DNA of 64,000 nucleotides from Takakia lepidozioides (GCA_030704615.1 CM060731.1:81530001-81594000), one strand, 5' to 3'. Shown: positions 9,636-44,402, numbered from the stretch's first letter. Made by a program: numbers and translations. Notes: a model not told the origin generated them from the sequence alone.

Positions 9636-9929
9636 CTATCGGATCGGGATCTAATCATTTTTTCTTAAGCCTATGTGGTTTGAAATTGGTATGATTCAAC
9701 TTAATCCTTGATCCATTTTTTTGCGTCATCCATGCCGGATGAATGCTGTACCTAGGTTTTTATCGTGGACAAATGACATCCATACAGGATGACATCAGAG
9801 ATGAATGCCTATTAATGTTATCAGTTATACACGATTTCATCCACACTGGATGAAATCGCGTGGAGTGAGGCCTTATCACTTTGCTAAACCTAAAGAAAAA
9901 CACGAAGCTCGTGCTTAAGCTTGTGTTGG

Positions 9930-13190: not shown

Positions 13191-13195
13191 AACTG

Positions 13196-18850: not shown

Positions 18851-18940
18851 ATGCCCCCGCCATCGGAGAAGATTCACAGGCTAGTTGATGAAATCTCCAG
18901 CCTCACTCTACTTGAAGTTTCGGATCTCACAACGCTGTTG
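18851..18940 (+). pseudogene. captured fragment of organellar ribosomal protein L7/L12 (bL12) N-terminal domain
   Basis: PPSEKIHRLVDEISSLTLLEVSDLTTLL. Confidence 0.8.
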
Positions 18941-19954
18941 AACTCAAATGAAATGGAGGGGAACAGCAGGCACATGGCCAGGGAACCTAGGAAACCATAT
19001 AGAAACTTAGGGAACCGGGAACCAGTTACCAGATATTTTGGGTGTAACTTTAAATTTTAAACTTGAAAACTTATTATAAAAAAAAAAAAAAAAAAACCCT
19101 TTGATCTAATTTAAATGATTTAGAGCCAAATTGGCTTGCAACAGTGAGCGGTAGCAGGACGAGGCAAGAACTGACTCATAGCAGGGAGCTCCCTTGCTCT
19201 GCAATGGGCCCCATCTTCTTTGCCTCCCGCTCTTTTCATGTGCCTGCTCACCTCCCTCTCAGTGCAGCATTCCTTCTAATGCCACCCGCAGTGCTCGCAA
19301 TTTCATGTTGCCACCAATACAGGGAAGTGCCACCAATCCCGAGCTTATTCTGTCTTCCTTGAAAAGCCTGTTGGCCTATCTCAATCTTCTCATGTACTTA
19401 GCTTTTCTATCACAGTACTTGCCAGTTCACCTCCATGGCTGTGACCCTGCTCTCAAACAGTATATAAACATACATAAACTGTGCATCACACAGGCAGTCC
19501 TAAGGCTCTGTATTCTCTACACCTTTTAGCCTGTGACCACCTTCTTGGCAACAATCCAGGCTCTAGGATCTAACCTGCAACATGAGTGTGCAAAAGAACC
19601 GTTGTGATGCACACTCATCCAAAGAGTTCTGCTCCAGCTCAATACTCCATGCCCATTTGCTCTCACTCCTTACGGGCCGTCAAGTGGTCTTGGATAGAAA
19701 ACTCCCAGCTATCAAGACTTTATGGAGTAATATGAAATGCGACAGTCACCAGTATGACTGTGTTGAGCGCACCGATACATTAAAACGCTTACTGAAATGC
19801 TGCTTTTCGCTTTTTTGGCAGCCTTCTTGGCCATTCGAGAACCTTTGTCTGCAAGAAGAATGGAAGCAAAACACATGTGTGTCTGCTCTTCACCCTCTCC
19901 AAGATCTGCCACATGAAAGCCTTGTTTTACCAGACCTGTGTAGGGAGGCTCTTG

Positions 19955-20147
19955 CAAGGCCTGCATCCCTCAAGACTTCATCTATTGCAACATCATCATT
20001 CCATGCCACCTCAGGAATCACTTTGTTAAAATGACGTTGAATCTTCGTGACGTTTCGCTCATCTTGATCTGTGAGCAACAAATTGAAAGCAACACCTTTG
20101 CGACCAAACCGCCCGCTTCGACCGATTCGGTGCAGATATGTCTCAGG
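19955..20147 (-). pseudogene. captured C-terminal fragment of a DEAD-box RNA helicase (DBP5/RH38-like)
   Basis: [24 protein letters not shown]...[15 protein letters not shown]...LRDAGL (motif VI plus C-terminus). Confidence 0.8.
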
Positions 20148-21206
20148 GAGCTCTGTTCCCGAAAGCTTGACTGAACGAGGGAAAGTGGTCCGGTGCAGAA
20201 TCTCAGCGACATCAGCATTCCTCAGAAGTTCGTCTCCTTCATTGTGACCGGAAGTCAAATGCGTTCACATTGGCGAAGGTAACTGGTGCCTTGAACTTCC
20301 AACCCTGCAGCAAATGGCCATTGCGAGAGACAGCAAACAATGCAGACTTGCTGCCCTGCAAATTGGAACTAACTTAAGCCGGGAGAGACCTAATATTGCA
20401 TGGAACGGAAGCCAGTCCCACTCATGCTGGCGGAATATCGCTGGTCACCAAATCCCAGCCAGCGCGGGCCCTTCGCCGGGAGAGAGCAGGAGTAGCTTCA
20501 GATGAAGAAAGCAGTGTCTCGTTATCCCAGATATGAGAGAAATGGCTAATGTTGGCCGCCTCCCATGGGCCCATCGCGCCATCGCGCAGGCAGACAGTTC
20601 AGTGGTCACTACAAGACTCCATCACCAAGACCTTGTGGCCAACTATCAAAGTCTCCAACCTCCACACCTCTTGTTTTTTTTTTTTTTAAACTCACGAGCA
20701 GAGACGACAACTAGATCTGCGCGCACAGCCCATGGCAACAGCAGGGGCCAGATGGACTCCTGCCCCAAGATGTATATTATAATAGTGCTAAAAAAACATT
20801 GTATCTAGCTTAGCATTAAAAACTAGGTAGCATGATCTCTCTCGAGTGATAAGAAAACTAGAAAAACACACTGTTTACACAAGAAAACAACATGAATCCA
20901 ACAGCATCACTCTTTAAGATAATAGTAGTTGAGCCAGGGGCACCCCAAGCTATGGGGACTCCACCCCACAACAACCTACACTCCCATCATGAGTACACTC
21001 AGATCTAAACGCATGCAGGAGTTCGGTCGCACAGGCTCAACTCGAGAGAGATGAGCTACGCGACTGCCGCTCTCGTGAAGATAAGGCCGTTCAGGTGTCA
21101 AACTAAACTTGACACCTGATTTAACACTTGACCTAAATCCAAGTGTTAAATAAAAATAACTAGCTTTATTCTAGTTCTTTTCACACTGTGCTTATTTAAC
21201 TTGACA

Positions 21207-22132
21207 AACTGGAAATGCCTGGGCCGGGACGTCTGTGCCTTGCACCATTCGAAATCCTGCTGTAGAAAGAGCATCCGCCTCATTCTGAGAGAGGTTGCAA
21301 CCCAGTGCAACATGCCAGACACCCGGAGGCTTCGGCATTCCCTGAATCCCGTACTTGGGCTTGCCAAATACACAGGTCATTATGTCGTGCCTACAGAACC
21401 AAAACGTCTGCGTTGTGGCGTGAGCAAATATGAGAGTCAAAAATCTGCCGCTGAAACAAGGTGCAGGTACAGCACCGTGTGGGTTCCTCCGAATCATCTC
21501 ACCACACCGTGCTCTCGTATCCACCCAGATGGCGCAACACTTCTCTCGAAATGCCGACAATGTCCTTGCAATTCTCCACTGTGACTCTGACACTCTTGTC
21601 TCCACAATGGGTATGTTGTACTGCGTTACTATATATGGCTCGTTATGTTCCTCGGGCATGTGTCATGTGCTCAAAGGAGATGGTGATCTTGAACGTGCAG
21701 GACTTGCAGTGCTCGACGAGACCTCATCGGGCAACATCACGGGACCACGAGGGAGCGTGCGAATATTCTTGTTAGCTCGCCATGAATCCTCTTCTCCGCC
21801 AGGTGCCTCGTCAAGTCTCCGTCTCACTGGACGGGTGTGAACATCTCCTTCCAAGTGTTGGCCTCTTCGAAGCAATGGCGTGTCCCGAGGGCCCTCTCGC
21901 AAGGCTGCTGCCCACTTCCGAGGATTCTTTGATCTGGAGGCAGTCCGCATCAGCATTTCCTGCCTGTCCGGCCCCAAGCCCCACTGTTTCCTTTCAAGAA
22001 CTCGTTGTACCTGCATTGCTGTATAATTGACCTCATAATGTCCTCCGTTGTGGCAGTGAGGATGTCCACTAGATGCGCCGCAGAGGAGACACGCCAGGAA
22101 GAATATACTGATTCGGCCATGTTTGTTGTCGG
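21207..22132 (-). pseudogene. MULE-like transposase, middle segment with catalytic-E region
   Basis: TTNMAESVYSSW matches the T-x-N-x-x-E-S motif. It joins 39920 (DTDM[P/S]|TTNMAES) and 13799 in frame after the insertions are excised. Confidence 0.8.
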
Positions 22133-23036
22133 TGTCAAATTAAATAAACCATTCTCAGATATAACCACAGGTTGACAAAAATCGTAGCAACATCTCAAGC
22201 CTCATGTTCTGCTCCACTTGGCACACATAGCCAGTCTAATTGCAGGCTCCCTGTGACCAAGCTATATTATAATAATGCTTAAAAACAAAAACTTAATATT
22301 AGCTCAGCACTAGAAAACTAGATAGAGGATCTCTCTCGAGTGATAAGAAAGGACTAAACTCAAATAACAAGAGAAACACAAAACACAACACCATCACTCT
22401 TTAAAATAGTAGTCAATCCAGGGGCACCCCAAGCTATGGGGACTCCACCCCACAACAATACTCAGGTTTTGAACGGTGAAGAAGCTCGGTCGTGCAGGCT
22501 CAACTCGAGAGAGATGAGCCGCACGACTGACGCTCTCGTGAAGATAAGACGGTTCAGGTGTCAAACTAAAATTGACACCTGACTTAACACTTGAACTAAA
22601 TCCAAGTGTTAAATACAAATAACTAGCTTTATTCTAGTTAGTTTCACGCTTGCGCTGGAATCGGACACCGTGCCGCCAAAGCGATCTCGCTGCCGGTCAT
22701 GCGTTGCGGTGTCGTGAACTCCTCGCTTTCTTACATCGATTTAGCTAAAGCCACGTTTCTTATGCCCATAAATGGCTGCATGCCTTCACATCGCAATAAA
22801 GAAAGAGGATAGACAGAAGAGCCGGACGATGCACCGGAGAGCGGTAGCCATGAGGCGGGCTGTGGTGCAAGCTGTTGCTTCCTGCATGAACGCAGGATTT
22901 TCCTCTCCGTGCCAGCAAGGTGATCAAGTGTGAGTAGGCTGTTCGTGCTTCTGCAGCAGGAGTTGGCCACAAGGCCATCCTCCCTTCCATTTGATGAGGG
23001 TGAGGTGGATGGAAGGAGGAGACTATAGCAAGTAGA

Positions 23037-23465
23037 CCATCAAGTGGTCAGTAAGTTGGTTGAGCCGAGTTTCCAGCTCCAGTTCCATTGCTGATAAGGT
23101 GATATGCGCCTCACTTGCCAACGCTATCTTCTCTTCTAGCTCCCTTGCCTTCATCTGACATTGCTCAAGACTTGTACGAAGCTCCAGTTGCTATTGCTGA
23201 AAGGAATCACGTTCAAGTTTATCATGCTGGGCTGACTCTGCCTGAGACTGCAAAGGTTGCCTTAGTGCAAAGTGGAGGCTTGCGATTCTACGTTCCAAAT
23301 CTGACCGGGCAACTTCCATGAAATTTCATCACCATTATCAAACTGGCTGTCCACGGCATCCAGATGCTGGTGCCGTTGCTTCCGTAATGAGCCAGCAGCT
23401 TGCTCGTCGATCTGTTGCAAAAGCTTCTCAGCCACTTTAAGTTTGGAGGAAAGCCATCCCGCCAT
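23037..23465 (-). pseudogene. captured, internally deleted fragments of golgin-84-family (GC2-like) gene
   Basis: MAGWLSSKLKVAEKLLQQIDEQAAGSL joined to the coiled-coil segment ...ELELETRLNQLTDHL. Confidence 0.75.
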
Positions 23466-23529
23466 CTTCCTTGTCTTCCTCAATCTGGTCTCATTGCTCG
23501 CGATGGATTTACAGCTATGCCAGATGACA

Positions 23530-23801
23530 TCCTTCTTTAGGTGTGATCGGTGAACTGAAGCTGAGGGCTGGTTCATCTTCTTAGTTTTGGTGGTGGCAAG
23601 CACAACTGATAGACCCTCACCAGCTGAGGCAACAGCCACTGTCTTCTTGTTGGCAAGCCCTGAATATTTGAACGTGTTCAAGTTATACAAATTGTTCGGC
23701 TCAGAGCTGAATGTCACAGATGCATTGCCATTGCCGTTCCTCGTCACCAAAAACTTGTTGCTGTTCTTTACCAACAACCAGATCAGGTCCGAAGACGCCA
23801 T
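23530..23801 (-). pseudogene. RPL28: captured uninterrupted 5' fragment of 60S ribosomal protein L28
   Basis: MASSDLIWLLVKNSNKFLV...FSSEPNNLYNLNTFKYSGLANKKTV. Confidence 0.9.
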
Positions 23802-23904
23802 CCTTCGACCCGAGGAGGGGATCCCGCTCCAACAAAATGGACGGCTGCAGCGAAATGCAATGAGCACGAAAGAGACATCCTTCTCACTAATGGAACAAGT
23901 CCTG

Positions 23905-24197
23905 GGGTGCGTTTGCTGGAGTTTCTGGCGACTATGCCATCGTCGTGTCTCACAACCCTGACAGCGGCACTACTCGCATTAAGTTGCCGTCTGGAGCAAA
24001 GAAGGTTGTACCAAGCGGATGCCGAGCAATGGTAGGGCAGGTTGTTGGAGGGGGCCAAACAAAGAAGCCTATGCTGAATGCAGGTAATGCGTATCACAAG
24101 TACAAGGTGAAGCGCAACAGCTGGCCTAAGGTGCGGGGTGTGGCCATGAACCCTGTTGAGCATCCCCACGGAGGTGGTAACCATCAGCACATTGGAG
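23905..24197 (+). pseudogene. RPL8: captured internal fragment of 60S ribosomal protein L8 (uL2)
   Basis: [13 protein letters not shown]...KLPSGAKK...[25 protein letters not shown]. Confidence 0.92.
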
Positions 24198-25057
24198 CCC
24201 GCCAGAAAGCCCGACTTGCACAGAGACGAGCAGGAGACTCCCGCTGCAACCTGCATTGAGACAGCCGCCATAGCTCCTAAAGCCAATCCTTCAGCTTTGT
24301 ACGCCCGCTCTTGCCGCCCTCTCAGACTGTCGAAGCCCTTTGCCTTGAGGGTAGGGGGTCGGGACACATGAGGGGCTGCCCCTGTGGTGGGGGCAGTGGC
24401 AGCGATAGGTACGGGGGGCTGAAGCACCCTTGAGTGCCCAAGGCACTCAAGGAGGCGGAGGTGCTCACTAGGTGGAGCCCTGCACACCGGGATGCGGTGG
24501 GGGTGGCTTCACAAAGGGGTGGTGGTAGCTTAGCGGGACTTAGTGAGGGTGGCATAGGACTTACCTTGGGGCGGAGACCTCATGGTGGGAGTCGTGGGGA
24601 GTCTTGGGACTCATCACGGTCCATAGGGGCCGTGGTGGGTGGGCCAAGACTCACCGTGACTCATCACCGGGAGTCGAGGGTTTTCGTGGTGGTTCGCCAT
24701 AAAATGGCATGGTTGTTTGTGAAACCCCCCGCGGACAGCTACAGAAGTATATTTAGGGAGTAGTAACCTCGAGAACGGTGCAAGCCCGTTGGTGACCAAA
24801 AACTAGTGAGTAAGCGAGCGAGCCGGAAAGCGACCAAAGAGTGGGGAGCTGTTCCAGACTGCCAACTACCAAAGGGAATTCCCGCTGGGCCCAAATCGGT
24901 GGAGGGTTCTTTGGGAGATCAAAGGGGGACCGTTATGCCCCGGTGAGCAGCCGAAGCTCCAAGTTGGCCCGGCGGCCATGTTGGGAGTTAGGCACACGCA
25001 TCAAAGCGAGTAACTATGACTTGAAGGGGAGCTTACCGAAGTGAGGTGCGCGACACT

Positions 25058-25069
25058 TGGTATCAGAGC
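25058..25069 (+). promoter_or_regulatory. primer-binding site, tRNA-iMet
   Basis: TGGTATCAGAGC two bases after the 5' LTR. Confidence 0.9.
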
Positions 25070-25110
25070 TTAGAGTTCAGTACGTGATCGTCCTTGGGAT
25101 TGGCCTCATC

Positions 25111-28100
25111 ATGGGGTCGGGCAAGCCAAAGCGAAAGCGGAACGGCCCAAAAGATGATGATCCCGGTGAGCCCGATGGGGGCGACGTGTCACCGAGGCGG
25201 CCGTTTGAGGAAGCGATGCATGTTTCCGAAAACGAGGCCGCTCAAGGGCGGGAGGAATCTGAGGAGTCGGAGCCCAAGGAATCCTTGAGAGCTCCGACCG
25301 ACCAACATATGCCTCCCATGCCGGCAGCCTTTTGGGAAGGGTTGTTGGCGCAGTTTGGCGGGACGTTGAAAGACGTGTTGAAGGCGGCTAATGCCACTTC
25401 CACTAAGGCAAAGTTTAAGGTGAAGCCTAAGGAACCCGGCACCTTCGAGGGTGTCCAAAATCGGAAGGCACTCAACACCTGGCTCCTGGAGCTAGAGCAG
25501 TACTTCCGGGCGGCCAAGTTGAGTGACGAGGATCGGGTGGAAGTGGCTCCCACCTATTTGAGGGGCTATGCTCAACAATGGTGGCAGAAACGCCTTCACG
25601 ACCGAGGTCCAAGCCCGGAAACCTTGAACTGGATGGGTTCAAGGAATTGATGAAGAGACAGTTTGTGCCCCTCAACGCGTCCTGGCTTGCCCGGGACAAG
25701 ATGAGGAATTTGAAGCAAACAGATGACATTCGGGGATATGTCCAGGCTTTCAATGAGCTTTTGCTCGAAGTCGCGGACATGGCAGAACTAGAAATGGTCT
25801 TCAACTTTGTGGCGGGACTGGCCCCATGGGCCAGGCGGAAGTTGGAGGAGAAGCCACCTAAGACTTTGAACGAGGCAATTGAGAGGGCTGAATGTTTCTC
25901 GGATGTCCCTAGGGGTGAAAGACAAGGCCGTACGGAGCTGAACCACAAGAAGACCCGGCGGGAAGGTGAAGAAGTGGGATAGGCCACGCGGCGACAATGG
26001 CACGTGGAAATCGAAGGGAGGGCCTTCACACGTCAAGACGGTACCCGGTGCTTCGAAAGGAAAAGCGGGTGGAGCGGCTTATGGCGGACAGAAGACCACC
26101 TTTGATGGAGTGTGTTTCAATTGCGGGGAGCTCGGGCACATGGCCAAGAAGTGCACAAAACCTCGACAATTGAACATGACTCGGGCAACCACGGAGCTGT
26201 CAGAAGATACCATCAGTCGCTTGGTGGAAGCGGTGGTCGCCACGACTTGCAACGTAGGCAACTATTCTTGTGAGTTGTATCAGGAAACTGGCGCCCTACG
26301 TAAAGGGAGTCAGTTATTGTTTGTGGATGGGATAATATCCGGAACTAATGTGTCGTTGTTGGTGGACACAGGAGGGTCGCACTCCTTCATGACGCCGGCG
26401 GCGGCGCAAAAGTTGGGACTCTCGACAAGTGACGTGGGGGCCTCTATTGAGGTGCATTCTGCCAAAAAAGAACCACAACTGGTGACAAGGTTGGCATTTG
26501 ACGTTCCTCTTCAACTGGGGAGTTGGGGATGACCTTTTTGAGCAAATCCGGAGCGGTCATAGATGGCCGCAAGGGAGTAGTCACACTGCCATGTGGGAAT
26601 GGTGGCGAGGTCTTACGAGTGTCAGAAACGCCCAAACCCGTGGGAGGGCGAATAAGCCTTCTGTCAGCAAGGGAGTGGGCCGTGGAGGAGGCACACGAGC
26701 CCCAGTTTTTGCTCTACATTAGAGAAGTGAAGGGGAAAGGCGATGGGGAGCCGAGCCCAGATTGGATCAAGGGGATTTTGGAGAAATACCAGGATGTGAT
26801 GCCGGAGGATTTACCAAGCGGTTTGCCACCGCGAAGAGGAGTTGACCACAAGATTGAGGTGATACCGGGATCAGAACCGCCTGCCAAGGCGCCCTACCGG
26901 TTGAGCCACAGAGAGTTGGTCGAGCTGAAGACTCAGCTCAAAGATCTAATGTCAAAGGGGTACATCCGGCCGAGTAAGTCACCTTACGGAGCCCCGGTGC
27001 TATTTGCAGATAAAAAGGATGGGACGCTGCGGATGTGTGTCGATTACAGGGCTCTGAATAAGGTGACTATCAAAAACCGGTACCCTTTGCCAAGGATCGA
27101 CGACCTCTTCGATCGGTTGGCAGGAGCGAAGTATTTCAACCGGATCGACTTGCGCTCCGGCTATCATCAAATTCGGGTGGCGGAAGGGAGAGGAGAAAGA
27201 CGCGTGCAGGACAAGGTATGGTTCATATGAGTTCTTGGTGATGCCTTTTGGGCTCACCAATGCACCAGCGACATTTAGCACGCTGATGAACAGCCTTTTT
27301 CAGGATGGTTAGATGACTTTTGTGATCGTGTACATCGACGACATCTTGGTGTACTCGAAAACGAAGGAGGAGCACTTGGAGCACCTGAAAAGGGTGTTCC
27401 AAAAATTGCGGGAAGGGAAGCTATACGCCAAAGCTTCAAAGTGCGAATTCGGGGTCACGAAAGTGGGTTCTTGGGGCATGTGATTACACAGGATGGGATC
27501 AAAATGGATGACAGAAAGGTGAGGGCGATCTTGGACTGGGAGCCTCCGACTTTGGTCCCGGGAGTGCGATCCTTCCTAGGACTCGCCTCCTATTACCGGA
27601 AGTATGTGAGAAATTTCGCCAAGATCGCGGGGCCGCTGTCGGACCTTCTGTGTAAATCCAAAGTCTGGGTATGGAACACCTTTTGTGGCCAAGCTTTTGC
27701 TGAATTGAAGCAGCGGATGGCGGAAGCTCCAGTCTTGAAAATCCCGGAGTTCGATCGTCCATTCGAGATTCATACGGATGCGTCGGACTTCGCGATTGGG
27801 GGTGTACTTATGCAAGATGGACGTCCAGTGGCTTACGAAAGTAAGAAACTAAATGAAGTGGAGCGACGGTGGCCAACGCACGAAAAAAAAGAGATGAAGG
27901 CGGTGGTGCATTGCCTTGAGCTTTGGCGCCACTATGTTGGTTCCAACCCAGTGAAGGTATTCACGGACAATGTTACGGTGAAGTATTTTGCCACGCAGCC
28001 CAAGTTGTCCCCAAAACAACTTAGGTGGCAAGATACTTTGGCAGTGTTTGACGTGGATATCCAGTACAAACCGGGACGTGACAATGTGGTGGCCGATGCT

Positions 28101-29560
28101 TTAAGTAGAAAGCAGCAGCTCATGTTGGTGTACAGGGGCGAGACGGCGCTCCAAAGGAAGATCCGGAAGGCTTTCCGGAAGGATGAGCTGGCGAAGTCTG
28201 TGATGCAAGACTTGAGGAGGGGGGTTAAATCGCAGTTTCCACTTGCAAAATGGACTGCTCCGGTATAAGCAAAAGCGTCTCTACGTGCCGAAGGGAGGGA
28301 TCAGAGATAGTCTCTTGAGAGAATGCCATGATAGCCCGCTTGCGGGCCACGGCGGAGCCAAGCGCACTGCGGCACTCTTGAAGAAAGAGTATTTCTGGCC
28401 CAAACTGAGGGAGGAGGCAGAGGAGTATGTCAAGACATGCACCACATGCAACAAAACCGGAGCGAGTACAAAAAGCAAGCGGGGCTGTTACAACCCTTGC
28501 CGATTCCAGAGGGGACTTGGGAAAGCGTCTCGATGGATTTCATGACTGCTATGTCGCTGTCAAAAGGATTCGATGCAATCATGGTGGTGGTGGTGGATAG
28601 GTTCAGTAAAATGGGCCATTTCATCCCACCAAGGAGACGGCAACGGCGCAGGAGGACAAGGCGACTTTACTTCGCCCACGTCTTAAAGCATCATGGAGTC
28701 CCGAAGGATATTGTCTCGGACCGCGATCCAAAGTTTACGAGTAAATTTTGGATGACACTTTGGAAGAAGATGGGGACGAGGCTGAAGATGAGCACCGCCT
28801 TCCGACCTACGACCGACGGCCAAACGGAAAGAGTGAATTCCGTAGTGAAGCAGATCTTGCGGAATTACGTGTCGGCAGACCAATCAGACTGGGTGGAACA
28901 CTTAGACGCGGTAGAGTTCTGTTATAATAACACAGAACACTCCGCAACGGGAGTTTCCCTTTCGTATTGGTCTATGGAAAAGCACCTCTGGTGCCGACAA
29001 GTTGGGCCGCCCAGGACGTTGAGAGGAAACCGGGTAGCGGCGGTACTGGAAGAACGTGAGCGTTTGTTGAAGCTCGCAAAGTACAACATTGCCAAAGCTA
29101 GGAAACCGTATGAAAGGCAGGCGAATCAGAAGCGGAGGGGAAGTGAAGTTTGAGGCAGGCACAGAGGTCTGGTTTGAACATCAAGAATTTCCGACTACCT
29201 CCGGAAGTGAGTCCAAAGTTCGTACCTCCGTATGCGGAACCCTTTCGCATCTGGAAGGTTATGAATGAGGATGTGTATGAATTGGAGCTGCGGCAAACAG
29301 CAAGGTGCATCCAGTATTCCACGTCTCCCTTTTGAAGCCTTACTTCAAAGATGAAGCGCGTCCGAATCGGCATCAAGTGTTGCGTCCGCCACCTGTGCTG
29401 TTGGATCATGAAAATGAACGTGAGTACGAGGTGGAGGCAGTACTTAAGTCAAGGAGGTTCAAGAACCGAGAAACGGAGTATCTCGTCAAATGGAAGGGCT
29501 ATCATCATGTGGAGGCATCTTGGGTGCGTGCCTCAGAAATGGAAACGCATCCGAGGCGGT
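25111..29560 (+). pseudogene. gag-pol: gag, CCHC knuckle, protease, RT, RNase H, integrase, chromodomain; multiple frameshifts
   Basis: CFNCGELGHMAKKC; LLVDTGG; [11 protein letters not shown]; YIDD (~27330); HTDASDFAIGGVL; SDRDPKFTS; TDGQTERVN; YEVEAVL...EYLVKWKGY...SWV. Confidence 0.92.
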
Positions 29561-32500
29561 TGCAGTTTTTGAAGGGCGACCTCAAAGCGGAAGAAGCGTT
29601 GATGGGACATCCCTTGGAGCATGGGGGAGGAAATGCATGCTTAGCCCGGCTTAGCTAGCTTAGGAATCCGATTGCAAAAACTGTATTGTACAAAAAATTT
29701 GTTATAAAGGAAATGGGTTCTAAATGTTGTGCGTCCTATTTTGTTTGGAATGGTGTGATGCATGGTGTGGTTGGCTAGTGTGTAGAATGCATGCTAGCTT
29801 ACAAAAGTGGGAGAGGTAAATTGGGTTAATCGTGTGTGTGTTTACGCAGTGCCGAAATCGGGTGACTCCCATCCAAGGGGCAAGGAAACATGCACCTTCT
29901 TTGGGAGTTCACGTGCTAGTGCGCACCTGGCGCGTGCGCGTACTATAACTACGCTACCGAGGCTATAACTGCGCTACCGAGGTGGTTGCCTTGTAGTAGG
30001 AAGCTACGTGCTTCCGTTCACGTACTATAATCGTGTAGCCTCGGGACGGGAAGTCATAGTGCGGCTTCGACGTGTTCCCGTACCTCAGGCCAGCATTCCA
30101 AGACGGACCCCAATTGTAATGATTGGGGCGCACGGTTGGTTCAAGGTTCTTCCTAGTCAAGGGGGTTCGAGGTGACCCTTGTGCAAGGTAATGCCAAGCG
30201 GCATCATGAGCGATCGCAAACAATGTTGTTGCAGTAAGGCGATTCGATCCTCGGGGAGGATCATTCCTTGGCCTTGAAGTAGGCCAAGAAGAGTGCACTG
30301 GGAGGAGCTTGAGAGGCTCCACCCCTGGCCGGGACTTGGAGGAAGTCGGCCGAACTAGCTAGTGGAGAGTAGAGTCAAGTGTAGGGTTTGGTTCTTGCCA
30401 TGGGACGCCATGGTACGGAAACAAACTCCTTGATGTGGGACGCCACAACTTGGATGTTCGTTTCTACAAAATGGACAAGTCGATGAGGACATCGACTCCC
30501 GTAGGGGGTGTGTGTCGTGGCCTTTGCCTTGAGGGGCAGGGGGTCGGGACACATGAGGGGCTGCCCCTGTGGTGGGGGCAGTGGCAGCGATAGGTACGGG
30601 GGGCTGAAGCACCCTTGAGTGCCCAAGGCACTCAAGGAGGTGGAGGTGCTCACTAGGTGGAGCCCCGCACACCGGGATGCGGTGGGGGGGGCTTCACAAA
30701 AGGGTGGTGGTAGCTTAGCGGGACTTAGGGGGGTGGCATAGGACTCACCTTGGGGCGGAGACCTCGTGGTGGGAGTCGTGGGGAGTCTTGGGACTCATCA
30801 CGGTCCATAGGGGCCGTGGTGGGTGGGCCAAGACTCACCGCAACTCATCACCGGGAGTCGAGGGTTTTCGTGGTGGTTCGCCATAAAATGGCATGGTTGT
30901 TTGTGAAACCCCCGCGGACAACTACAGAAGTATATATAGGGAGTAGTAACCCCGAGAACGGTGCAAGCCCGTTGGTGACCAAAACTAGTAAGTAAGCGAG
31001 CGAGCCCGAAAGCGACCAAAGAGTGGGGAGCTGTTCCGGACTGCCAACTACCAAAGGGAATTCCCGCTGGGCCCAAATCGGTGGAGGGTTCTTTGGGAGA
31101 TCAAAGGGGGACCGTTATGCCCCGGTGAGCAGCCGAAGCTCTAAGTTGGCCCGGCGGCCAGGTTGGGAGTTAGGCGCGCGCATCAAAGCGAGTAACTATG
31201 ACTTGAAGGGGAGCTTACCGAAGTGAGGTACGCGACACAGACGCTGATAAGCATATGTAAACTCCACCTTACACAAAGAGAAAGCATGACCCAGGTGGAG
31301 AAGTCCATTCATGTGAGGATAGGGGAAGTTTCCAAAGAGCTTTTCACCTTCCTTTGAATTTTTAAATTTGAAAGGATAGTTGATAGTTGCAGAAAGGGGA
31401 AATCTACGTATCTAGATCTGGTTTTAATTTTTTGGACTGTGTTAAAAATCTATGGAATTTTTTGAGTGTGAGTGTGCCATGAAAGATCCACAATTCTGTT
31501 TCTAGAACCTGTTGTGGTCTATATGAGAGACAAATCTGTGGATGTCCTCCTTGTATGGCTGGGGGAAATGAGGACGTAATTGAAGGACAAGTCTCTTCTC
31601 TTAGCCTGTGCACACAAGGGGACAAGATTTATGTTTCCCAAGGAACTCAGACTGATTTGAATGGAGAGCAGTTGGGCGAGTTGATTGCATACTGGGAGTC
31701 AGGCATTAGCAGTAGACAACAAACTGTTGTAGTTGGCGTTGAGGGCCTCAATATTACTTTGGACAGTCAGAACTCTGTTAGAGCCAGCAGTTCTACAGCT
31801 GTAGGTGAAATACCAAAGTGGGTGAAAGCTAGGCTTGGAACATAGCCAAAGACAGCCCCAGGGACCAAGGTGTTCAGCCACAAGGCCGTGGTGTATTGGA
31901 GTAGAGGAGCAGAAGCTACACAAGTTTGTGCAATCAGACATGGTTGCAGCCGGACACGCTCTGCACAAGACAAACACGAGCGGGGGTTCATTAGCAATGA
32001 CAAGTTTGTCCTGCTTGAAGGAGATGCAATCATTCGCAATGAGGACACCTGCAACCGTCTCCAAGCTTTCGAGTTGAGAGACTGTCAGACCCTACCTTTT
32101 TTTCTTTAGTGTTCAGTGAGGGAGGGGGGGTATTGCTTGTCTCTACCTGGTAGAAAGAGGAGGAGGGTTGGTTAGAGCGAGCTACTGTAGCTTGGGACAA
32201 GGTTTAGTGGCAGGTTTCTGGACATGATATACCTCCTACACCTTACATCATGCAAAGCGAGGCACTTTGAGAGAAGTCTGGCAGTTGATAGCATAGATCA
32301 GGATTAGATCTTGCTTGGTCGGGCTTCTATTCTTCCCTCCCTCTCTTTACTATTTTCATTACTTTGTACTTGTAGTTGCCAAAGCCTCTTTTGGTGGAGG
32401 CCAGTCAGTCCGGGGTTTTGGGCTGGGATATTCTGCAGTATCAGCATTGCAGATGGATTTTGGTGTGGGGGTGTTGATGTTTTGATTCTTGTGTTTGGAT

Positions 32501-32834
32501 CCCCCCCCAACACCTGCATGCTTACTGTGCGCCATGTTGGTTTTTGTGGGCGCTTGCTTTCATAGGATTAGGCCGGATTTGATCACCGGTCAATCCTAGA
32601 GTATGCTGTCATTGGTGAGGCTAGAGTGTGACCAGCAAGACCACCAGTGTTTCTTCTATGGTGAGACTGGGTTGATGACCAGCCAACCATAGGAGTTCTT
32701 GCGATGGATGCAGGTACAGGTGCCCTGAGCCACTGGGATATATGACCCTTAAACTGCACAGGTGCCCACCGTGTCACTATTAGAATTAGTACTAGAGCCT
32801 CATAGTGTCACGTGGGGGAGGTGCACATTGTGAG

Positions 32835-34330
32835 TGTCATCACGAGTTACCCAAGGGTTTTGAGGGGAGTATGGCTACAGGCAATAATAGTGAGAGTGGG
32901 TTCACAAGACGAGGTATTCGGTTCAGACCACCTTCACCTCCACCCTAAACTAGTGCAGAATCAGACACAGACTCGGAGGCTTCATCAACAGGGTGTGCAG
33001 TTTCATTCGCCATTGTTGTGGGACGACATGGAGGAGATGTATGGAGCTACCAAGGGGCCTCGTAGGTACTCTGGAGTTGTGGGCACAATTGAGCTGGATG
33101 ACTTTATCCAGGAGTTCGACAGCTGGTGTGATTTGCAGCAGATGCGCAATCCACAGCTATTCACCCCATTCATGGCGTGGAAGGGACTGTTCTAGCATTT
33201 GGAAGGCCCGCCTATGGGACGATTACCACGAGTTCAGGCGAGGACATGAAGCAGAGATTGAGGAGTGGAGGATGTATTGGTCACCTGACTACGTCTCCAT
33301 TACTCGAGGCACGACGCGACCAGTAGCTGCATCAGCACCAATATCTCCCACTGCCAGCACTAGTAGTGGAACAAGTAGTGCCGGTACTTTTGCAGGTGGT
33401 ACTAGTTCAAAAGGTGCTACTACTCCTCCTGCCACGACTACAACACATGTGCCTACATTCAACCCGGTGGTGGAGTTCTTCCAGGAGTTGCGGAGGAACT
33501 ATCAAGGTGTACGGACAGAGAAGCTGCGAAGTTTGTAAGACTTCCAGCGCAAACCCAGTGAGAGCCTGCGAGAGGCGTACACTCGTATGAGGCGCTTGAT
33601 AAGTGTGACCAAGGGGGTTACTGAAGCTCAGGCAATCCAGTTCTGGTATGGAATTTTGGACAAGGAGCTCAGGAGAAGGGTGCGGGATGCAACCCTGTTA
33701 CAAGCAGCCCAACCCACATTAGCAGATGTGTTTCTGCTGGCTGAGCGGATTGAGTCAACATGGTGGAGGAACGAGTTGTTACCATTGGATTTGGCAAAGA
33801 CATGCTGCACGAGGCGCAGCTGCCAGCCCACAGGCACAAGGGACTGCCCAACAGCGTGGTCAGGGGGGCAAGGTTTCCCAACCCAAATTTCATGGAGCTT
33901 ACATGGGACCTCAGGTGCAGAGGCAGGCAGTAGCATCTTTTGCAAGCCAACAGCAACCAGGGGTGATATGTTGGACATGTGGAGGACCCCATGTCAAGAG
34001 AGATTTTCCCAGAGAGTGGCAAAAGGCCGGCACAAGCACAGCCTACACAGTTGCAGTGTGGCATTGTGGCAATATGGGCATGGAGATGCCCAGTGTTTAT
34101 GACTTGCATCCTGAGTTGCGCCCAGGCCAGTTCCAAGGGAACAATGGTGGCCGGGGGCGAGGGGGACCAGCCCAGAGAGGACGAGGTGGCCGGGCACGAG
34201 GTGCAGGCCAAGGGCAAGCTCAACATGGCCAAGGACGCGAAGGTTAGGGTATTGACCAAGGCATGGCCAACCGGCTTCAGCAGCTAGAGCAGAGGCTCGC
34301 TGCCATGGCTACAGCTCAAGTGGTACCGGC
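32835..34330 (+). pseudogene. gag with two CCHC-like zinc knuckles, disrupted
   Basis: FQRKPSESLREAYTRM (retrotrans_gag-like); CWTCGGPH; CGHCG-like...GHGDAQC; RGG-rich tail. Confidence 0.75.
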
Positions 34331-34759
34331 TCCCAGGCGGAATGGTCCACCTCCTGCTCCTGAGGGAGGAGATATGGGAGGCATGGGATTCATGTGCGGA
34401 GCAGCACTACCACTAGAGCAGGTGGAGTCTGCTGCAGCCGTTGCCAACACTAGCCGCCTTTACAGCTGCAGTTAGTTGGCCTGGAGAGTTGGTGGAAGGC
34501 AATGCCCATGCAGAGGATGTGCCACCTTCAGCAGAGCAAAATGACATGCATGGTACGGTGGAGTTGCCTGCCATGGTTGCTCACACTCCATTGTGGGGTA
34601 CGAGCAAGGATTTGCAGCAGGCTGCTGATGGACGGGTGCAACAAGCCTGGGTAGAGGCCTTCGTACTGTCAGGAGAAGAAAAGAGTGCGGTGATTGCACC
34701 AGGACCGCCTCAGTTGTCGCCATTGGATACCACACTTCTTGTGTGGCAGTGCCCGGATG

Positions 34760-35710
34760 AAGGCATATGCCTTCTAGACTTGTTTGGCGAGATCAGCACT
34801 GGATTGGCTGCAGTGCTGCAGGCAGGTGTACGAGTTCGACGTTACCTGTATGTGGAGAGGGATGAGACTACACGACGCGTCTCACTATGCCATGTTGCTC
34901 AGTTGGTACAGCAGTACCCTGATTTGTTACCAGTGTCTGCAGTTCGTGGATACCAACAAGCCTTGCCAGCAGACATTTCGTTGCTGGGGGGCATTTGGAG
35001 CAACATGGTTGGGATCCATTGATCTGGTAGTGGCAGGTTGGCCCTGCCAAGGCATTCATCAGCGGGCATGGCAATGGATTGCGAGACTCGAGGACGGGTC
35101 TGTTTTGGGAGATGGTGCGGGTTTTGCGCCATTTGCAGCTTCATCAAGCTATATCTCCAGCATACATCTTAGAGAATGTGCCACTGATGGGCGATTCTCG
35201 GGCCAGGGTGATGGCCAGTGTGCATCAAGTCCGGTCATGGCTTGGGTCAGCAGTGTTGCTGGATGCAGCTGCAGTGGGGTCACGGGCTCATCGTCCACGG
35301 CTATGGTGGACTAACTTGATGCCACCTGCACTGCTCAAGCGTGCATTTGATGGGGTGCAGCGGCTAGCACACCTCACAGTGGATAGCATTTGGACACAGA
35401 AAGGCAGTCTCAAACGGTGAGATACGATGACCGTTCACCTTTGGCAGTGGTCAACAGGGTGGGTCAACCGCGAGCAGCATTACCTACACTGCTCAGCTTC
35501 CCAGGATCCCATGCTTTTCGGGATGGTGGACCTGGCCTCTTGTGGGATAGCCAATTGCAACAATTAGTGGAGCCCAATGCTGACGAGCGCGGGCGATGGG
35601 TTTTTACCACTGGTACCACGGTGGTGCCATCTCTTTCTGAGGCATCACGTCGTCAGGTTTTGGGGCAAGCAATGGATCTCAATTGTTTGACCTGGATTAT
35701 CAGCTTGGCT
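34760..35710 (+). pseudogene. C5-cytosine DNA methyltransferase domain (DNMT3-like) inside the retroelement polyprotein, frameshifted
   Basis: Motif I LLDLFGEISTG, II YVERD, IV DLVVAGWPCQG, VI YILENV, VIII AHRPRLWWTNL and X RQVLGQAMD, in the canonical order. Confidence 0.9.
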
Positions 35711-36129
35711 ATGGCTGAACAACGCAGAGTACACTTCCCTTCATGGTCTCCCTGCCTACCGAGACGGTACAGGCAACAAGTGGGGGCGAGCAGGTGAGGA
35801 CACGCGTGCAGGCCGCATCCATGGCACACGTGGGAGGTGCTCGAGGTTCAGAATGAGGTTGGCAGCCAAGGCAGCAGTGATGGATCAGGTTGGGGATTTT
35901 TCTCGGTTGAGGAGGTCTCAAGGATGGGGATGATGGGGGGGCAGGGTGAGACATTGTCACTGATAGAGGAGGCAGTGGTCATTGCTCAAGAGGTTGCAGC
36001 ATAGCAACCACGGGACGCGTCTTCTACCTCTAAGCCTGCTGGACTCAAGGTTGCAGTCACGGAGGACAACTGGGAACCTGATGTTGGACCTATAGTCACC
36101 GGAGGAGAGAGACGACGTATACGGCGGTT

Positions 36130-38990
36130 CTTGAGGGCTTACGGAACTGCTTTGCCTTCAGTTTGAAGGACTTAGGAGCACTGAAGGGTCAAGAGATTCA
36201 GATTGAATTGGTACTGACACGCCAATCTTTCGGAGACCCTATAGATACAGTGACATGGAGAGGTCCTTGATTCAGATGAGAACTCAGGACCTTTGGGAGG
36301 CTGGTTTGGTGGAGCTATCTGGGGGAGAGTATGCTTCAGCCACAGTGATGCCAGCCAAGAAGGATGTTTATGGCAATTGGACGGAGAGACGTATGTGCGG
36401 TGATTACCGGCCTGTAAATCGTCAAACCAAGTCCGATAGGTATGCCATGCCGACACCAGAGGAGATCTTTGATGCCATTGGGCATGCCAAGGTCTTTAGT
36501 ACTTTGGATTTACAATCCGAATATCACCAATTGCCGATCAAGGAGGCGGATAAGTAGAAGACGGCATTCTGGGGGATCAATGAGCACGGGAAGGATTGCC
36601 TATACCAGTGGCGGTTCTTACCATTTGGGCTTAAGAACGCTCCTGCAGAGTTTCAGAGAGTCATGGACAGGATTCTAGCAGGGGTGGAGTTTGCTCGGTG
36701 CTACATAGATGACATCATCATCTTTAGTGCTATGGTGGAGGAGCATGAGAGACACCTTCAGGTGATATTTGAGCGCTTGAGGGCGCACGGATTGAAGTTA
36801 CATCCGGGGAAGTGCAAGTTTTTCCACAACCAGATTGAGTATCTGGGTCCATGATATATCCTGGAGGATTGGGGTACAACAGACTAAGGTAGAGTCCATT
36901 GCACAGATTCCACGCCCCACGATTGAGCCGAGTTTGAGCTTTCATGGGGTTAGCAAACTATTATAGACGGTTTGTTAAGGGATTTAGTGTCATTGCAAAG
37001 GCTTAACCAAAGCTGCCCAAGTGGACCACAATAAGTGGCAGTGGGAAGATGAGCAAGAACAAGCTTTTCAAGAGCTCAGGCGAGGTTGACTCGGCGTCCA
37101 TCTTGAGACGACCTATCAGGGGGCGTCCTTTTCAGCTGCATACGGATTGGAGCATGCTGGGGCTTGGAGCGGTGCTCACACAGGTGGATGATGAGGGAAG
37201 AGAGTTCGTAGTGGCTTATGCTAGCTGCTCGAACAATGCTGCCGAGTCTAAGTATAGCTCATATGAGGGAGAATGCTTAGCTGCAGTGTGGGGTGGGTGG
37301 CACACTTCAGGTGCTATCTATACGACAATCTCTTCACCCTTGTCACAGATCACCAAACCACTCAAGTGGTTGATGGAGTCAGACAAGCTTACGGGGAAGC
37401 TTGCACGGTGGGCACTCATCCTCCAAGAATATGACTTTCAGTTATGCATCGACCAGGTTTGGTCAATCGCAATGCAGATGGGTTGAGTCGCAATCCATGC
37501 CACGAGGCCAACAGGATGACACTAGAGCTCGGTGGCATGGTGAGACGGACGAGGAGATGGTGCCCGGATGGCATGCATCTGCATTTCTGTGTATATTGGC
37601 AGTGGAAGGCCAGGTTGGACCTACAACAGGGATGACTGTAGATCAAGTGTCTGAGAACCCTGAGGCCAGCAATGAGCAAGGTGGCGCCAAAGATATACAT
37701 GAGGATTTAGTTGTGTTGGGACTACCTCCGCACTGGAGACACTGCAGCCACTGTGACTGCCAAGGAGAGGGATCGGATCCTACAACGAGCCAAGAGGTTC
37801 AAGTGGGAGGGGACACACCTGCTCCGAGTGGGGGAGGATGGTCGAGTGAGGGTTGTGCCTCACCCAACACAGCGGGCATGGTTAGTGCGGCATGCCCATG
37901 AGGAGTTGGGGCATTTTGGGGTGCGACGCACTCATAGTCTACTGCAGGGGCAGTATTGGTGCGTGGTATGCACACAGAGGTGCAACAAATTTGTGGCTAG
38001 GTGCATGGTGTGACAGGGTGCGTGCTTCATTCAACGCCCCTACTCCACAATTGCACCCTCTTCCGATCATGGGATTGGGCTACAGGTGGAGTCTTGACTT
38101 CGCAGGGGCGTTGCCACTGACCATGCGTCACAAAAGTACGTTTGGTTGATGGTGGAGCACTTCTCCAAAGTGGATCGAGTTGGTTCCGTTGCCTGATAAG
38201 GCTAGTGAGGGGAGTGCGTATGCATTCTTGGGATTGTGTACTTAGCCGCTTTGGTGCTCCAGCTGAGGTACTCACGGACCAAGGGAGAGAGTTCTTGGGG
38301 GAGTTTCAGGCTTTGTGTGACAAGGCCTTGATAGACCACCGCACCACTTCTCGGGATCATCCTGAGGCCGATGGCTTGGCAGAGAGGGTTGTTCAGATAG
38401 TGAAGAGGGATTTGCGCAAGTATGGCTTGCAGAAGGGACACCTAGGAGATTGAGACCTTCAGTTACCTTGGTTAGCCATGGGCTACAGGTTCAGCAAGCA
38501 AGCATCACTTGCCTCCTTCTCACCATACTTTCTTCTCTTTGGCCGAGAGCCGGATTTGCCTGCATCCATTCATAGAGAAGCTGCTACAGTTCTCAACCTT
38601 GACGATCCGGACATGTGGGCACGTGCATGTGATCAGCGTGCAGAGTTGTTCAAGAAAGTCATGCCCATGGCTTTCGAGAACCTTGCCATTGCACAACATC
38701 GTGATACGTTGAGGTATGCTACCATACATGGTGGGGGCTATCGTCCTGGGGTTCAGAGATTTAACCCTGGTGACTATGTTTATCTGCAGCAGACTGCTCC
38801 TACAACCTTGGATGTGACTACAGGACGTACTATTTTGAGGGTTCGAGAGGTGTTGCCCTCAAGAGTCCTAATCTTGGAGGGTCGGGATGGCATGATTTGG
38901 AAGGACCATGTGCGTAATTGCGCGCCATGTCACCTTCCAAATGTTGATGGAAGGGTTGACCCAAACCTGGCAGTGGTACCTGCAAGTTTG
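36130..38990 (+). pseudogene. RT, RNase H and integrase (Ty3/gypsy order), disrupted
   Basis: RRMCGDYRPVN; FSTLDL; PFGLKNAP; CYIDD (~36700); LHTDWS..GLGAVL; HEELGHFG; VLTDQGREF; ADGLAERVV. Confidence 0.92.
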
Positions 38991-38992
38991 AG

Positions 38993-39137
38993 GTGCATGT
39001 TGTGTGGGTCTGCTAGAGGGGCAGCCACCATGCTGGTGTGTGATCGATGCTCTAGAGGCTGGCATATGGGATGTTTGACTCCACCTCTTGAGATGGTTCA
39101 TGATGGGGATTGGTTATGTCCGCATTGCATTGGATAG
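38993..39137 (+). other. PHD finger at integrase C-terminus
   Basis: CMLCGSARGAATMLVCDRCSRGWHMGCLTPPLEMVHDGDWLCPHC is a C4HC3 pattern. Confidence 0.92.
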
Positions 39138-39919
39138 TGGGAGTGGATACAACCATGGAAGGCTAACAAGAAATGCAAGGCCAAGCTACTAGGAGACCTT
39201 GAACACACGAGATCCTGGCTCAAGTTCACAGATTGCAAGACGGCGACTAACGATGGGGCTACTCTTGTACCCGGCCTCTTGGTCTATAGAGTTTGAGTAC
39301 AATAGGGACAGTGATAGAGGACTTAGTACGGCTGTGGCTATTACATCTTGTAGCTATCTGGAGTTAGAGGGACCTATCCACCAGCTAGGGGGCGATTGTG
39401 GCAGACTACTTTATTGTGCATATATGCGTGGTGTGGTTTGGACAACGATGTAGTTGTGTAGCGATATGTATGTGCACGACAGCTGTCAAGTTAAATAAAC
39501 ACAGTGTGAAACTAACTAGAATAAAGCTAGTTATTTATATTTAACACTTGGATTTAGTTCAAGTGTTAAGTCAGGTGTCAAGTTTAGTTTGACACCTGAA
39601 CCGTCTTATCTTCACGAGAGCGTCAGTCGTGCGGCTCATATCTCTCGAGTTGAGCCTGCACGACCGAGCTCCTTCACCGTTCAGAACCTGAGTGTGCTTA
39701 TGAAGGGAGGATAGGTTGTTGTGGGGTGGAGTCCCCATAGCTTGGGGTGCCCCTGGCTTGACTAATATTTTAAAGAGTGATGGTGTTGTGTTTTGTGTTT
39801 CTCTTGTTATTTGAGTTTAGTCCTTTCTTATCATTGTGGCAGACTACTTTATTGTGCATATATGCGTGGTGTGGTTTGGACAGCGATGTAGTTGTGTAGC
39901 GATATGTATGCGCACGACA

Positions 39920-42180: not shown

Positions 42181-43422
42181 CCGGCAGATGTTCCCCTTGC
42201 ACGAAATGTAGCTCTATGCTTGTGAGGAGGGCAGTACACTATAGCGCTCGGGTTTTCTTCCATGGGAGATGTGCACACATGACTGCCAGGATGGCGTTCG
42301 GGCAAGCGCCCTGGGAAAAGGGGATGCAGCGGGGAAGGAATGCAGGGCCGATTTGTTCCGAGCGGCGAAGCCTATTCACGAATCCGGGAGCCCACTATCC
42401 CAAAAATCCACTGTCAGAGTGTAATGAACCTTGTCTCCGGAATGCGGCCCCTGGCCCTTTGCGCAATAACTGCCAACGGTATGCAGTCAGAAGGTATATG
42501 ATCAGTGCAGATGCGCTGCGCAAACCAATAATTTTGTCGGCTGACAAGAAGCGTGGGGGGCAAGCGTGCAAGCACCTTCCCCATGGACAGAGGGAACTGA
42601 CAGAGGTGGAATTCCAGTGGGTCTGATTGCAAGATTGAGTGCCAGACCCTCGCTGCCAAAAGTCAACATTCAACAAAATGCAACATTGCACAAAAAGTAG
42701 AACTTTGGTTCAAAGGAGACATTTTTATTAATAATGACTGTGACAGTATGCATGCCCTCACAAACCGAAGGAAGCAAAAATATGCATGCAATCCATGCTC
42801 AGGTAAGTTGGAATTTGCTCCTGTGTTGCACTATTCTCACAAGACTGGAACCTCGATTGGCCTCTCAACAAGCTCATGACTGACAGGGTGTCGGTAGGTG
42901 AAGACAATGGATGCAGCCCATTCGCCTTTGGTGTGGTGGACAACGGTGTCATGTCCTCTGTTATATGCACCATCGTAAATCGAGACCTTTGCTGTGGAGA
43001 CTCTGTGTCCATAGGACTCATCCTCGTAGCTTATGAGAATGTCCCCATACACTGTTTGGGATGGAATCCTCTCTGGCATGTACGTACACCTGATGCAATC
43101 CTCGTAGGCCCACTGGCAGCACCTCCAATGATGTAGTAAGGCCCTGCGGCTTTTGGGGATGTTCCATGTAGGCGGATATTGCAGATCAACGATTCGCAGG
43201 CACCAAAGCCGCGCAAGCCCGTCCCCGCGAGGCTGATCGTGGAAGCCAGGAAGGTACTCAAGAGCGGACTGGTGCACCCTCCTCTGCTGAGAGTGGTCTA
43301 TCCAATCCTACAGGTATATGAAGATATCCCCTGACTTGGGCGAGAAGTCCCACGGGGTGAGATGCTTGTTTGGGCAGTTGCTGGAATCCCGGCACACCAT
43401 CCGACTATTGAGAACATCCCCC

Positions 43423-44205: not shown

Positions 44206-44402
44206 GTATCGACCCTTCATCAACAATTTTTTCAGTCGTTCGTTGCATCAAGTTTTTCGCGTTTTTTGGTCTAAACAGACACTAAACTTAGAGTTTTTTG
44301 CGTGCAGGCCACTTCTTGGCACGTTATTCCCACCATTGTCGTCCGCTAGAGACAAATTCGGTGCCGGTTATCCATCCATGAGGTGAACCGAATTTTCCTG
44401 CA

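Follow-up and report, generated by a model that had tools for sequence, protein, structure and literature searches.

The 64,000-nucleotide stretch of the moss Takakia lepidozioides analysed here (GCA_030704615.1 CM060731.1:81530001-81594000; termed the window, with positions counted from its first letter) was compared with itself and found to harbor two copies of one retroelement family, of which copy 1 occupies 22133-39919 on the plus strand and copy 2 lies about 1 kb upstream on the minus strand. Copy 1 is dead and rearranged and belongs to the streptophyte Gypsy-DNMT3 retrotransposons, a lineage that has been published under the name KnitGypsy-Dnmt3. From its 5′ end, the element is constructed from a repeat termed B, a self-complementary primer site, fragments of host genes, a leader, gag, a DNMT3-like methyltransferase, reverse transcriptase (RT), RNase H (RH), a DDE integrase (IN), a PHD finger, a polypurine tract (PPT), and a terminal A-B-A block, where an A repeat of 87-89 nt flanks a 350-nt B at the 3′ end of both window copies. 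This order of parts and both end coordinates of copy 1 had been proposed by an earlier model reading of the DNA alone (the sequence-only reading), and they proved to be exact. The same reading had considered the element as a candidate new retroelement system, which is not upheld, since KnitGypsy-Dnmt3 was already known to combine a Gypsy polyprotein, Dnmt3, and DIRS-like repeats and the same B...A-B-A layout was seen on the Klebsormidium nitens element L008. What remains valid is that the parts belong to one coherent retroelement family, whose features are shared across copies and species.

Coding region, damage and cargo of the window copies

Every open reading frame (ORF) of copy 1 is broken by stops and frameshifts, and the domain bounds collected in Table 1 were set by mapping onto the window the ORFs of a close intact relative on a metagenome contig (L004) together with the intact ORF1 (1339 aa) of Calypogeia fissa. 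Pfam matches were obtained in the order DNA_methylase (weak), RVT_1, RT_RNaseH, Integrase_H2C2, rve, and PHD; the window's own gag and upstream frames gave no Pfam match, and gag was recognised only via its relatives in Marchantia, Sphagnum, and Calypogeia. PDB searches with single pieces of the window's methylase frames were likewise weak or blank, so that the intact L004 ORF was needed, which found its best PDB matches in DNMT3A/3C/3B (E 6e-9), ahead of the plant DRM enzymes. The methylase region of the window aligns with the methylases of L004, Calypogeia, Marchantia, and Sphagnum and retains the catalytic PC of motif IV. Only 119 nt (34319-34438) separate gag from the methylase in copy 1, where the protease block of the intact relatives has been deleted; the missing sequence of about 1.1 kb corresponds to residues 464-825 of the Calypogeia ORF1, with DSGA at residue 697. 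The protease-less layout given by the sequence-only reading is thus attributed to a deletion in copy 1, not to the design of the family. At its C-terminus, the integrase of copy 1 carries the PHD finger at the place where a chromovirus, Chlamyvir included, has its chromodomain.

The 5′ B of copy 1 is not intact, being interrupted by an inversion of 506 bp (22148-22653). The two pieces are exactly contiguous in B coordinates, as such an inversion would leave them. A third copy in head-to-head orientation was also considered as the source of the inverted B and was rejected, since B nt 1-15 and B nt 16 onward fit together exactly at both breakpoints. At the other end, the junction between A1 and B forms the 10-bp palindrome GACAGCTGTC (39478-39487), and the 3′ terminus is given by A2 ending in CACGACA. 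The 4-bp target-site duplication (TSD) claimed earlier is perfect at copy 2 (AGTT at 21207-21210 and 13796-13799, with the 5′ end of the element beginning TGTCAAG), while the flanks of copy 1, TCGG and TCGA, agree in only three of four bases. Copy 2 has lost the internal part corresponding to positions 33650-37294 of copy 1, and the remainder is 92-94% identical to copy 1.

The 5′ untranslated region of the family picks up host-gene fragments that differ between copies. As the sequence-only reading had suggested, variable host-gene cargo is found in the two window copies, whose regions between the primer site and the leader show no similarity to each other. The fragment of RPL28e (eL28) in copy 1 has its best match in Sphagnum fallax at 86% identity, followed by bryophytes and lycophytes, which makes a land-plant host, namely a moss or a close relative, very probable on the evidence of the cargo. 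Copy 2 carries the C-terminus of a DDX19/DBP5-like DEAD-box helicase and, by a weak match, an N-terminal piece of bL12.

A complete Ty3 chromovirus of 6.9 kb, which is outside the family, is nested in the cargo interval of copy 1; its 720-bp long terminal repeats (LTRs) are 96.5% identical and its primer site matches tRNA-iMet. A solo LTR of the same chromovirus family was observed at 1446-1997 on the minus strand (89% identity). Downstream of copy 1, three tandem or inverted repeat blocks unrelated to the element were found at 43400-45030 (period about 96 bp), 48870-49380, and 51930-53640. Pfam searches with ten other long ORFs of the window revealed no host genes.

Table 1. Positions of features in the two window copies and in two complete relatives
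Feature	Position	Strand	Remarks
Copy 1, left flank TCGG	22129-22132	+	read directly; right flank TCGA; decayed 4-bp TSD
Copy 1, 5′ terminus, B nt 1-15	22133-22147	+	begins TGTCAA; abuts the inverted piece exactly in B coordinates
Copy 1, inverted 506-bp segment	22148-22653	-	B nt 16-end 22653..22341; primer-binding site 22340..22329; leader of about 80 nt to 22263; 115 nt more
Copy 1, variable 5′ region (cargo)	22654-24327	+	contains the RPL28e fragment
Copy 1 cargo, RPL28e (eL28) residues 18-106	23529-23798	antisense to element	Pfam Ribosomal_L28e, E 1e-20
Nested Ty3 chromovirus	24328-31237	+	gag-protease-RT-RH-IN-chromodomain; TSD CAGAC (5 bp)
Copy 1, leader	31382-32997	+	kept in both window copies; about 93.6% identity to copy 2 from 18722
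Copy 1, gag	32998-34319	+	degenerate; homologous to Calypogeia ORF1 residues 61-463 (CCHC knuckle included) and to Sphagnum and Marchantia gag
Copy 1, DNMT3-like C5 cytosine methyltransferase	34438-35860	+	three frames; motifs IV (PCQ), VI (ENV), VIII, and IX/X recognisable
Copy 1, RT and RNase H	36044-37500	+	one stop, one frameshift; RVT_1 E 2.5e-24; RT_RNaseH E 1.6e-22; 73% identity to L004 pol
Copy 1, DDE integrase (H2C2 zinc domain and rve core)	37717-38450	+	frameshifted; Pfam and L004 homology
Copy 1, integrase C-terminal region	38454-39134	+	C4HC3 PHD finger at its end (38994-39128); Pfam PHD E 2.4e-10 and translation
Copy 1, polypurine tract	39383-39394	+	immediately 5′ of A1; equivalent position in L004, Marchantia, Calypogeia, Klebsormidium, and Sphagnum
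Copy 1, 3′ block A1-GC-B-A2	39395-39919	+	A1 39395-39481; GC spacer; B 39484-39832; A2 39833-39919
Copy 2, whole element	13800-21206	-	A2 13800-13888; B to 14240; A1 14243-14329; primer site 20846-20835; 5′ B 20847-21206
Copy 2, body	14631-18722	-	IN-PHD 14631-16451; gag 16439-17200; leader to 18722
Copy 2, cargo region	18723-20772	-	unlike the cargo of copy 1
Copy 2 cargo, bL12 N-terminal piece	18851-19060	+	antisense to element
Copy 2 cargo, DDX19/DBP5-like helicase C-terminus	19890-20258	-	sense to element; E 3e-12
Calypogeia fissa L005	5′ B 3782-4122; A1 13171-13269; 3′ B 13271-13611; A2 13611-13709		TSD GTCA
Klebsormidium nitens L008	5′ B 360-1018; A1 13917-14096; 3′ B 14099-14754; A2 14755-14934		TSD TCTT; coding parts in the same order

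Relatives in other genomes and the anatomy of the termini

The IN-PHD piece of the window matched 312 protein clusters at E<1e-30, and among the best 150 of these, 43 also match the window's methylase region. Members of the family were named in K. nitens, Closterium, Marchantia polymorpha, C. fissa, and S. fallax, as well as in the chlorophytes Scenedesmus and Haematococcus; in M. polymorpha, at least 15 ORF1-like proteins are annotated as 'hypothetical proteins'. The close intact relative L004 shares about 72% protein identity with the window element and harbors an ORF of 284 aa running off the contig start, a 533-aa methylase ORF, and a 1033-aa RT-RH-IN-PHD ORF, and its pol is 40-46% identical to those of two K. 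nitens elements (L003 and L008). In the intact relatives, ORF1 encodes gag with a CCHC knuckle, an aspartic protease, and the DNMT3-like methylase, and ORF2 encodes RT, RNase H, the DDE integrase, and the C-terminal PHD finger.

The features listed by the sequence-only reading do co-occur in other copies and species, the elements being complete in Calypogeia and Klebsormidium and partial or rearranged in Marchantia and S. fallax. Three complete elements, namely window copy 2, Calypogeia L005, and Klebsormidium L008, combine the B...A-B-A layout with a perfect 4-bp TSD (AGTT, GTCA, and TCTT, respectively). The Calypogeia element is young, with an intact ORF1 (5840-9859), a B pair 99.4% identical, and an A pair 100% identical. 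A 3′ A-B-A block is present in both Marchantia (L002) and L004, the second A of the latter being cut by the contig end, and a second element on L002 is represented by its 5′ B and primer site. In S. fallax (L009, CM038202.1), whose pol is about 73% identical to that of the window at the DNA level, a 5′ B and a 3′ A1-B were found, and an inverted A followed by the first 334 nt of B (17288-18542) stands after the 3′ B in place of A2. This copy is rearranged, so that rearrangements around B recur in the S. fallax element and in the 506-bp inversion of copy 1. No A-B-A was found at the 3′ end of the Klebsormidium contig L003 (KFL_009030040), which is cut at its 5′ end, and neither A-B-A nor the palindrome was detected in contigs L001, L006, and L007, which may be collapsed or cut assemblies. 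On the metagenome contig L001, an 87-nt unit occurs twice in tandem downstream of pol (9051-9224), which may represent an assembly collapse or a different terminal design.

A quick RT-RH tree was built with the window RT read through, an X being placed at each break, and with five chromovirus and animal Gypsy outgroups. The window groups with Calypogeia, Marchantia, and L004 (Shimodaira-Hasegawa-like approximate likelihood ratio test, SH-aLRT, 97), Closterium is sister to a wider clade containing this group (SH-aLRT 83), and the whole family, including the K. nitens rows, stands apart from the outgroups (SH-aLRT 98), although the backbone is weak. The streptophyte members carry the methylase upstream of RT. 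A chlorophyte and metagenome clade of the IN-PHD family was observed to carry it between RNase H and integrase, giving RT-RH-DNMT-IN-PHD (P0014, P0029, P0041, P0059, P0062, and others), and the rows with this order form one clade (SH-aLRT 98); the two positions may reflect domain shuffling or a second capture.

The anatomy of the termini is conserved. In all elements that contain A-B-A or A1-B, the two element ends and a GC spacer form a 10-bp palindrome at A1|B, which covaries between lineages, reading GACA-GC-TGTC in bryophytes and GGCA-GC-TGCC in Klebsormidium. The polypurine tract ends exactly at the start of A1 across the elements compared, and in the window, L004, Marchantia, Calypogeia, and Klebsormidium, A2 follows B directly and begins at the nucleotide that also opens A1. 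Conserved terminal bases of the TG..CA type are found at the start of B and the end of A, whereas no such conservation exists at the start of A and the end of B. Five elements from four lineages share, at the same position, a stretch of 12-18 nt immediately after the 5′ B that pairs without mismatch with a site inside B; this pair measures 13 nt in the moss, 14 in Marchantia, 12 in Calypogeia, and 18 in Klebsormidium, and its sequence is different in each. None of the four lineages has a primer site that starts with TGG, and three of them have a TATA-like box some 30 nt upstream of the internal primer-like site. The perfect 4-bp TSDs in three complete elements, together with the self-complementary pair at the same place in five, imply that the layout is more than chance.

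Measured against a canonical Ty3/gypsy element, the family thus possesses a primer site after the 5′ repeat, a polypurine tract before the 3′ repeat, TG..CA ends, and a short TSD, but the primer site is self-complementary instead of tRNA-complementary, and the identical long terminal repeats at both ends are replaced by B alone at the 5′ end and A-B-A at the 3′ end.

A proposed replication model with joined cDNA ends and its alternatives

The best explanation overall, which is held with moderate confidence, is that the window element belongs to the streptophyte Gypsy-DNMT3 lineage and replicates through a joined-end intermediate that is opened at the internal palindrome. Transcription would start inside the 5′ B, about 30 nt after the TATA-like box, and the first 12-18 nt of the RNA would anneal to the site immediately behind B and serve as primer for the minus strand as in Tf1, while the plus strand would start at the polypurine tract before A1. 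Since the primer site follows B and the polypurine tract precedes A1, the textbook scheme of reverse transcription predicts from such an RNA a linear cDNA with a composite A+B at both ends. In the genomic copies, the end of B defined by the primer site is joined exactly to the start of A defined by the polypurine tract (B2|A2), and the integrated termini lie at the conserved A/B palindrome. From these two observations, we infer that the cDNA ends are joined before integration, as a 2-LTR circle or an equivalent form. The integrase would then open one palindromic A|B site to leave recessed CA-3′OH ends with a 2-nt overhang, and insertion of these ends would generate the 4-bp duplication that is seen in the genome, with the permuted provirus B-body-A-B-A as the outcome. 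The element may use its DNMT3 domain to methylate its own new DNA and its PHD finger to direct integration to certain chromatin. The self-priming and the circular intermediate suggested by the sequence-only reading are retained as reasonable inferences from the termini, the former being backed by the covarying complementary pair and the latter by the junction anatomy.

More tentatively, this family might be the first LTR-type retrotransposon whose DDE integrase normally acts on joined cDNA ends, a form resembling a 2-LTR circle, opened at a palindrome that is inherited inside the element; the provirus would be circularly permuted in each generation, and the lineage, conserved from Klebsormidium to bryophytes, would in addition bring along a de novo methylase and a finger that reads histones.

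Several points weigh against the joined-end model. Its putative intermediate is deduced from junction anatomy. A 2-LTR circle would hold two palindromes, and opening of the other one would give B-A-B-body-A, a form that was not seen among about six ends examined. The 5′ and 3′ B repeats are 7-9% apart, while the A pairs are near identical (A 97.7% against B 91% in copy 1; A 100% against B 93% in copy 2), a gap that simple co-synthesis at insertion would not predict; gene conversion between the closely spaced A copies may account for it. Both window copies are degenerate, so that nothing on activity can be read from them. In Calypogeia, motif VI of the methylase reads KNV and not ENV, which implies that the L005 enzyme may be inactive. 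Finally, the backbone of the RT tree is poorly resolved, with K. nitens KFL_009030040 in a polytomy.

The most serious competitor keeps the same family and dispenses with the circle: RT itself would build a linear B-body-A-B-A cDNA by an extra template switch, and the integrase would insert this linear DNA. Either the plus strand would jump from the end of the unique 5′ region (U5) to the start of A, or both termini would be regenerated with the internal A|B junction as template, a scheme that has been put forward for the Ngaro, PAT, and DIRS split repeats. In favor of this reading, tyrosine-recombinase elements have split direct repeats of exactly this topology (PMC5890265), both termini are present in full at the internal A|B junction, 2 nt apart, and one nucleotide of possible microhomology exists at B2|A2 in the moss and Calypogeia. 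Klebsormidium, however, shows no microhomology at this junction, and the 3′ B is neither followed by a primer site nor preceded by a polypurine tract, so that the standard priming rules do not give these ends; the template switch is judged unlikely.

Another explanation regards B...A-B-A as accidental, the product of local recombination, tandem insertion, or assembly at an ordinary LTR element with A+B as its true LTR. The window copies are old and have undergone inversion, deletion, and nested insertion, the S. fallax copy is rearranged too, and the metagenome contig L001 lacks A-B-A, all of which would suit such an origin. It is nonetheless highly improbable, because three complete elements in three genomes carry perfect 4-bp TSDs at the start of B and the end of A, one of them with repeats 99-100% identical, the conserved TG..CA bases are placed at these same two positions and not at the start of A or the end of B, and the pattern was published independently for K. 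nitens.

That the family is a DIRS/Ngaro-type element served by a tyrosine recombinase in trans or unrecognised, with an integrase irrelevant to integration, is scarcely credible, for although split direct repeats are the hallmark of those elements and DNMT3-bearing DIRS elements exist in Symbiodinium (PMC5890265), a tyrosine recombinase domain (Phage_integrase) was matched neither by the open frames of the window element nor by the ORFs of L001, L004, L006, and L007 or the intact relatives scanned, the ends are TG..CA with 4-bp TSDs of the kind that a DDE integrase makes, and RT places the family next to Gypsy elements, both in the RT-RH tree and in the legend of supplementary figure 14 of PMC5890265.

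Significance and comparison with known systems

These results extend DNMT3-bearing retrotransposons from one alga to land plants, including the model liverwort Marchantia. The young Calypogeia copy with its intact gag-protease-DNMT ORF makes the question of transposon self-methylation genetically testable; for K. nitens, methylase activity has already been assayed in yeast. The termini provide a testable model for the generation of DIRS-like split repeats by a DDE integrase, repeats which PMC5890265 noted without explaining them. In practical terms, software that detects LTR elements by identical terminal repeats will overlook such elements or misplace their ends, and the counts of DNMT genes in bryophyte genomes may include transposon copies.

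The nearest known system is KnitGypsy-Dnmt3 (de Mendoza et al. 2018, Nat Commun 9:1341, PMC5890265), a Gypsy element of K. nitens with Dnmt3 within Pol and repeats arranged DIRS-like, whose methylase domain has conserved catalytic residues and is under purifying selection. A 2026 preprint from the same group names 'streptophytes (Gypsy-DNMT3)'. The survey in PMC5890265 included only Physcomitrella and Selaginella among non-seed land plants and reported no DNMTs of retrotransposons in land plants; a PHD finger, self-priming, the palindrome, and land-plant hosts are absent from its main text, and Marchantia, Sphagnum, and PHD do not appear in the legends and species tables of its supplement. In the limited collection of literature searched, no paper on these elements in Marchantia, Sphagnum, or other bryophytes was found. 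As far as this search reached, neither the occurrence in bryophytes nor the detailed structure of the termini had been described before. Both KnitGypsy-Dnmt3 and the window family combine a Gypsy pol, a Dnmt3-like domain, and split direct repeats, and L008 shows the identical order of protease-region ORF, DNMT, RT, RH, IN, and PHD, along with a 4-bp TSD, a GC-spaced palindrome at A|B, a polypurine tract in front of A1, and a primer site that is self-complementary. They differ in host (a charophyte alga against a land plant), in their ends (TGCC..GGCA against TGTC..GACA), and in repeat size (A of 180 and B of 660 nt against 87 and 350 nt in the window), and the window copies are dead and bear host-gene fragments.

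Ngaro, PAT, and DIRS elements, SymbioDIRS-Dnmt3 included, resemble the family in their split direct repeats (A1-body-B1-A2-B2) and in an internal junction that holds both termini, and some of them carry a methyltransferase; the A1|B junction of the window, composed of the joined termini and GC, corresponds to the internal junctions of the DIRS type. They use a tyrosine recombinase and make no TSD, in contrast with the DDE integrase, TG..CA ends, and 4-bp TSD found here.

Tf1 self-primes from the first bases of its transcript and has ordinary identical LTRs and a chromodomain. With Tf1 and sushi-type elements, the window family appears to share a site after the 5′ repeat that is complementary to sequence within the repeat and not to the 3′ end of a tRNA, the pair covarying between lineages here, and this pair together with the TATA-like box would fit Tf1-style self-priming.

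PHD-bearing Gypsy elements of Chlamydomonas, such as Gypsy-7a_cRei (bioRxiv 10.1101/2022.06.16.496473), likewise have a Gypsy polyprotein in which a PHD finger serves as accessory chromatin domain. In Gypsy-7a_cRei, the PHD is listed before the integrase, no DNMT is reported, and the repeats are depicted as ordinary LTRs with sub-parts, whereas the PHD finger of the window is located at the integrase C-terminus.

Retroviral integrases, lastly, are reported in PMC1905944 and PMC1180852 to cleave palindromic LTR-LTR junctions. The retroviral 2-LTR circle described there is comparable to the intermediate proposed here in that a palindrome of joined CA/TG ends can be cleaved by integrase to give integration-competent ends. 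For retroviruses it is a side route, the ligation junction itself being the palindrome, while in the Takakia family the palindrome is inherited inside the element and the ligation-type junction is B2|A2.

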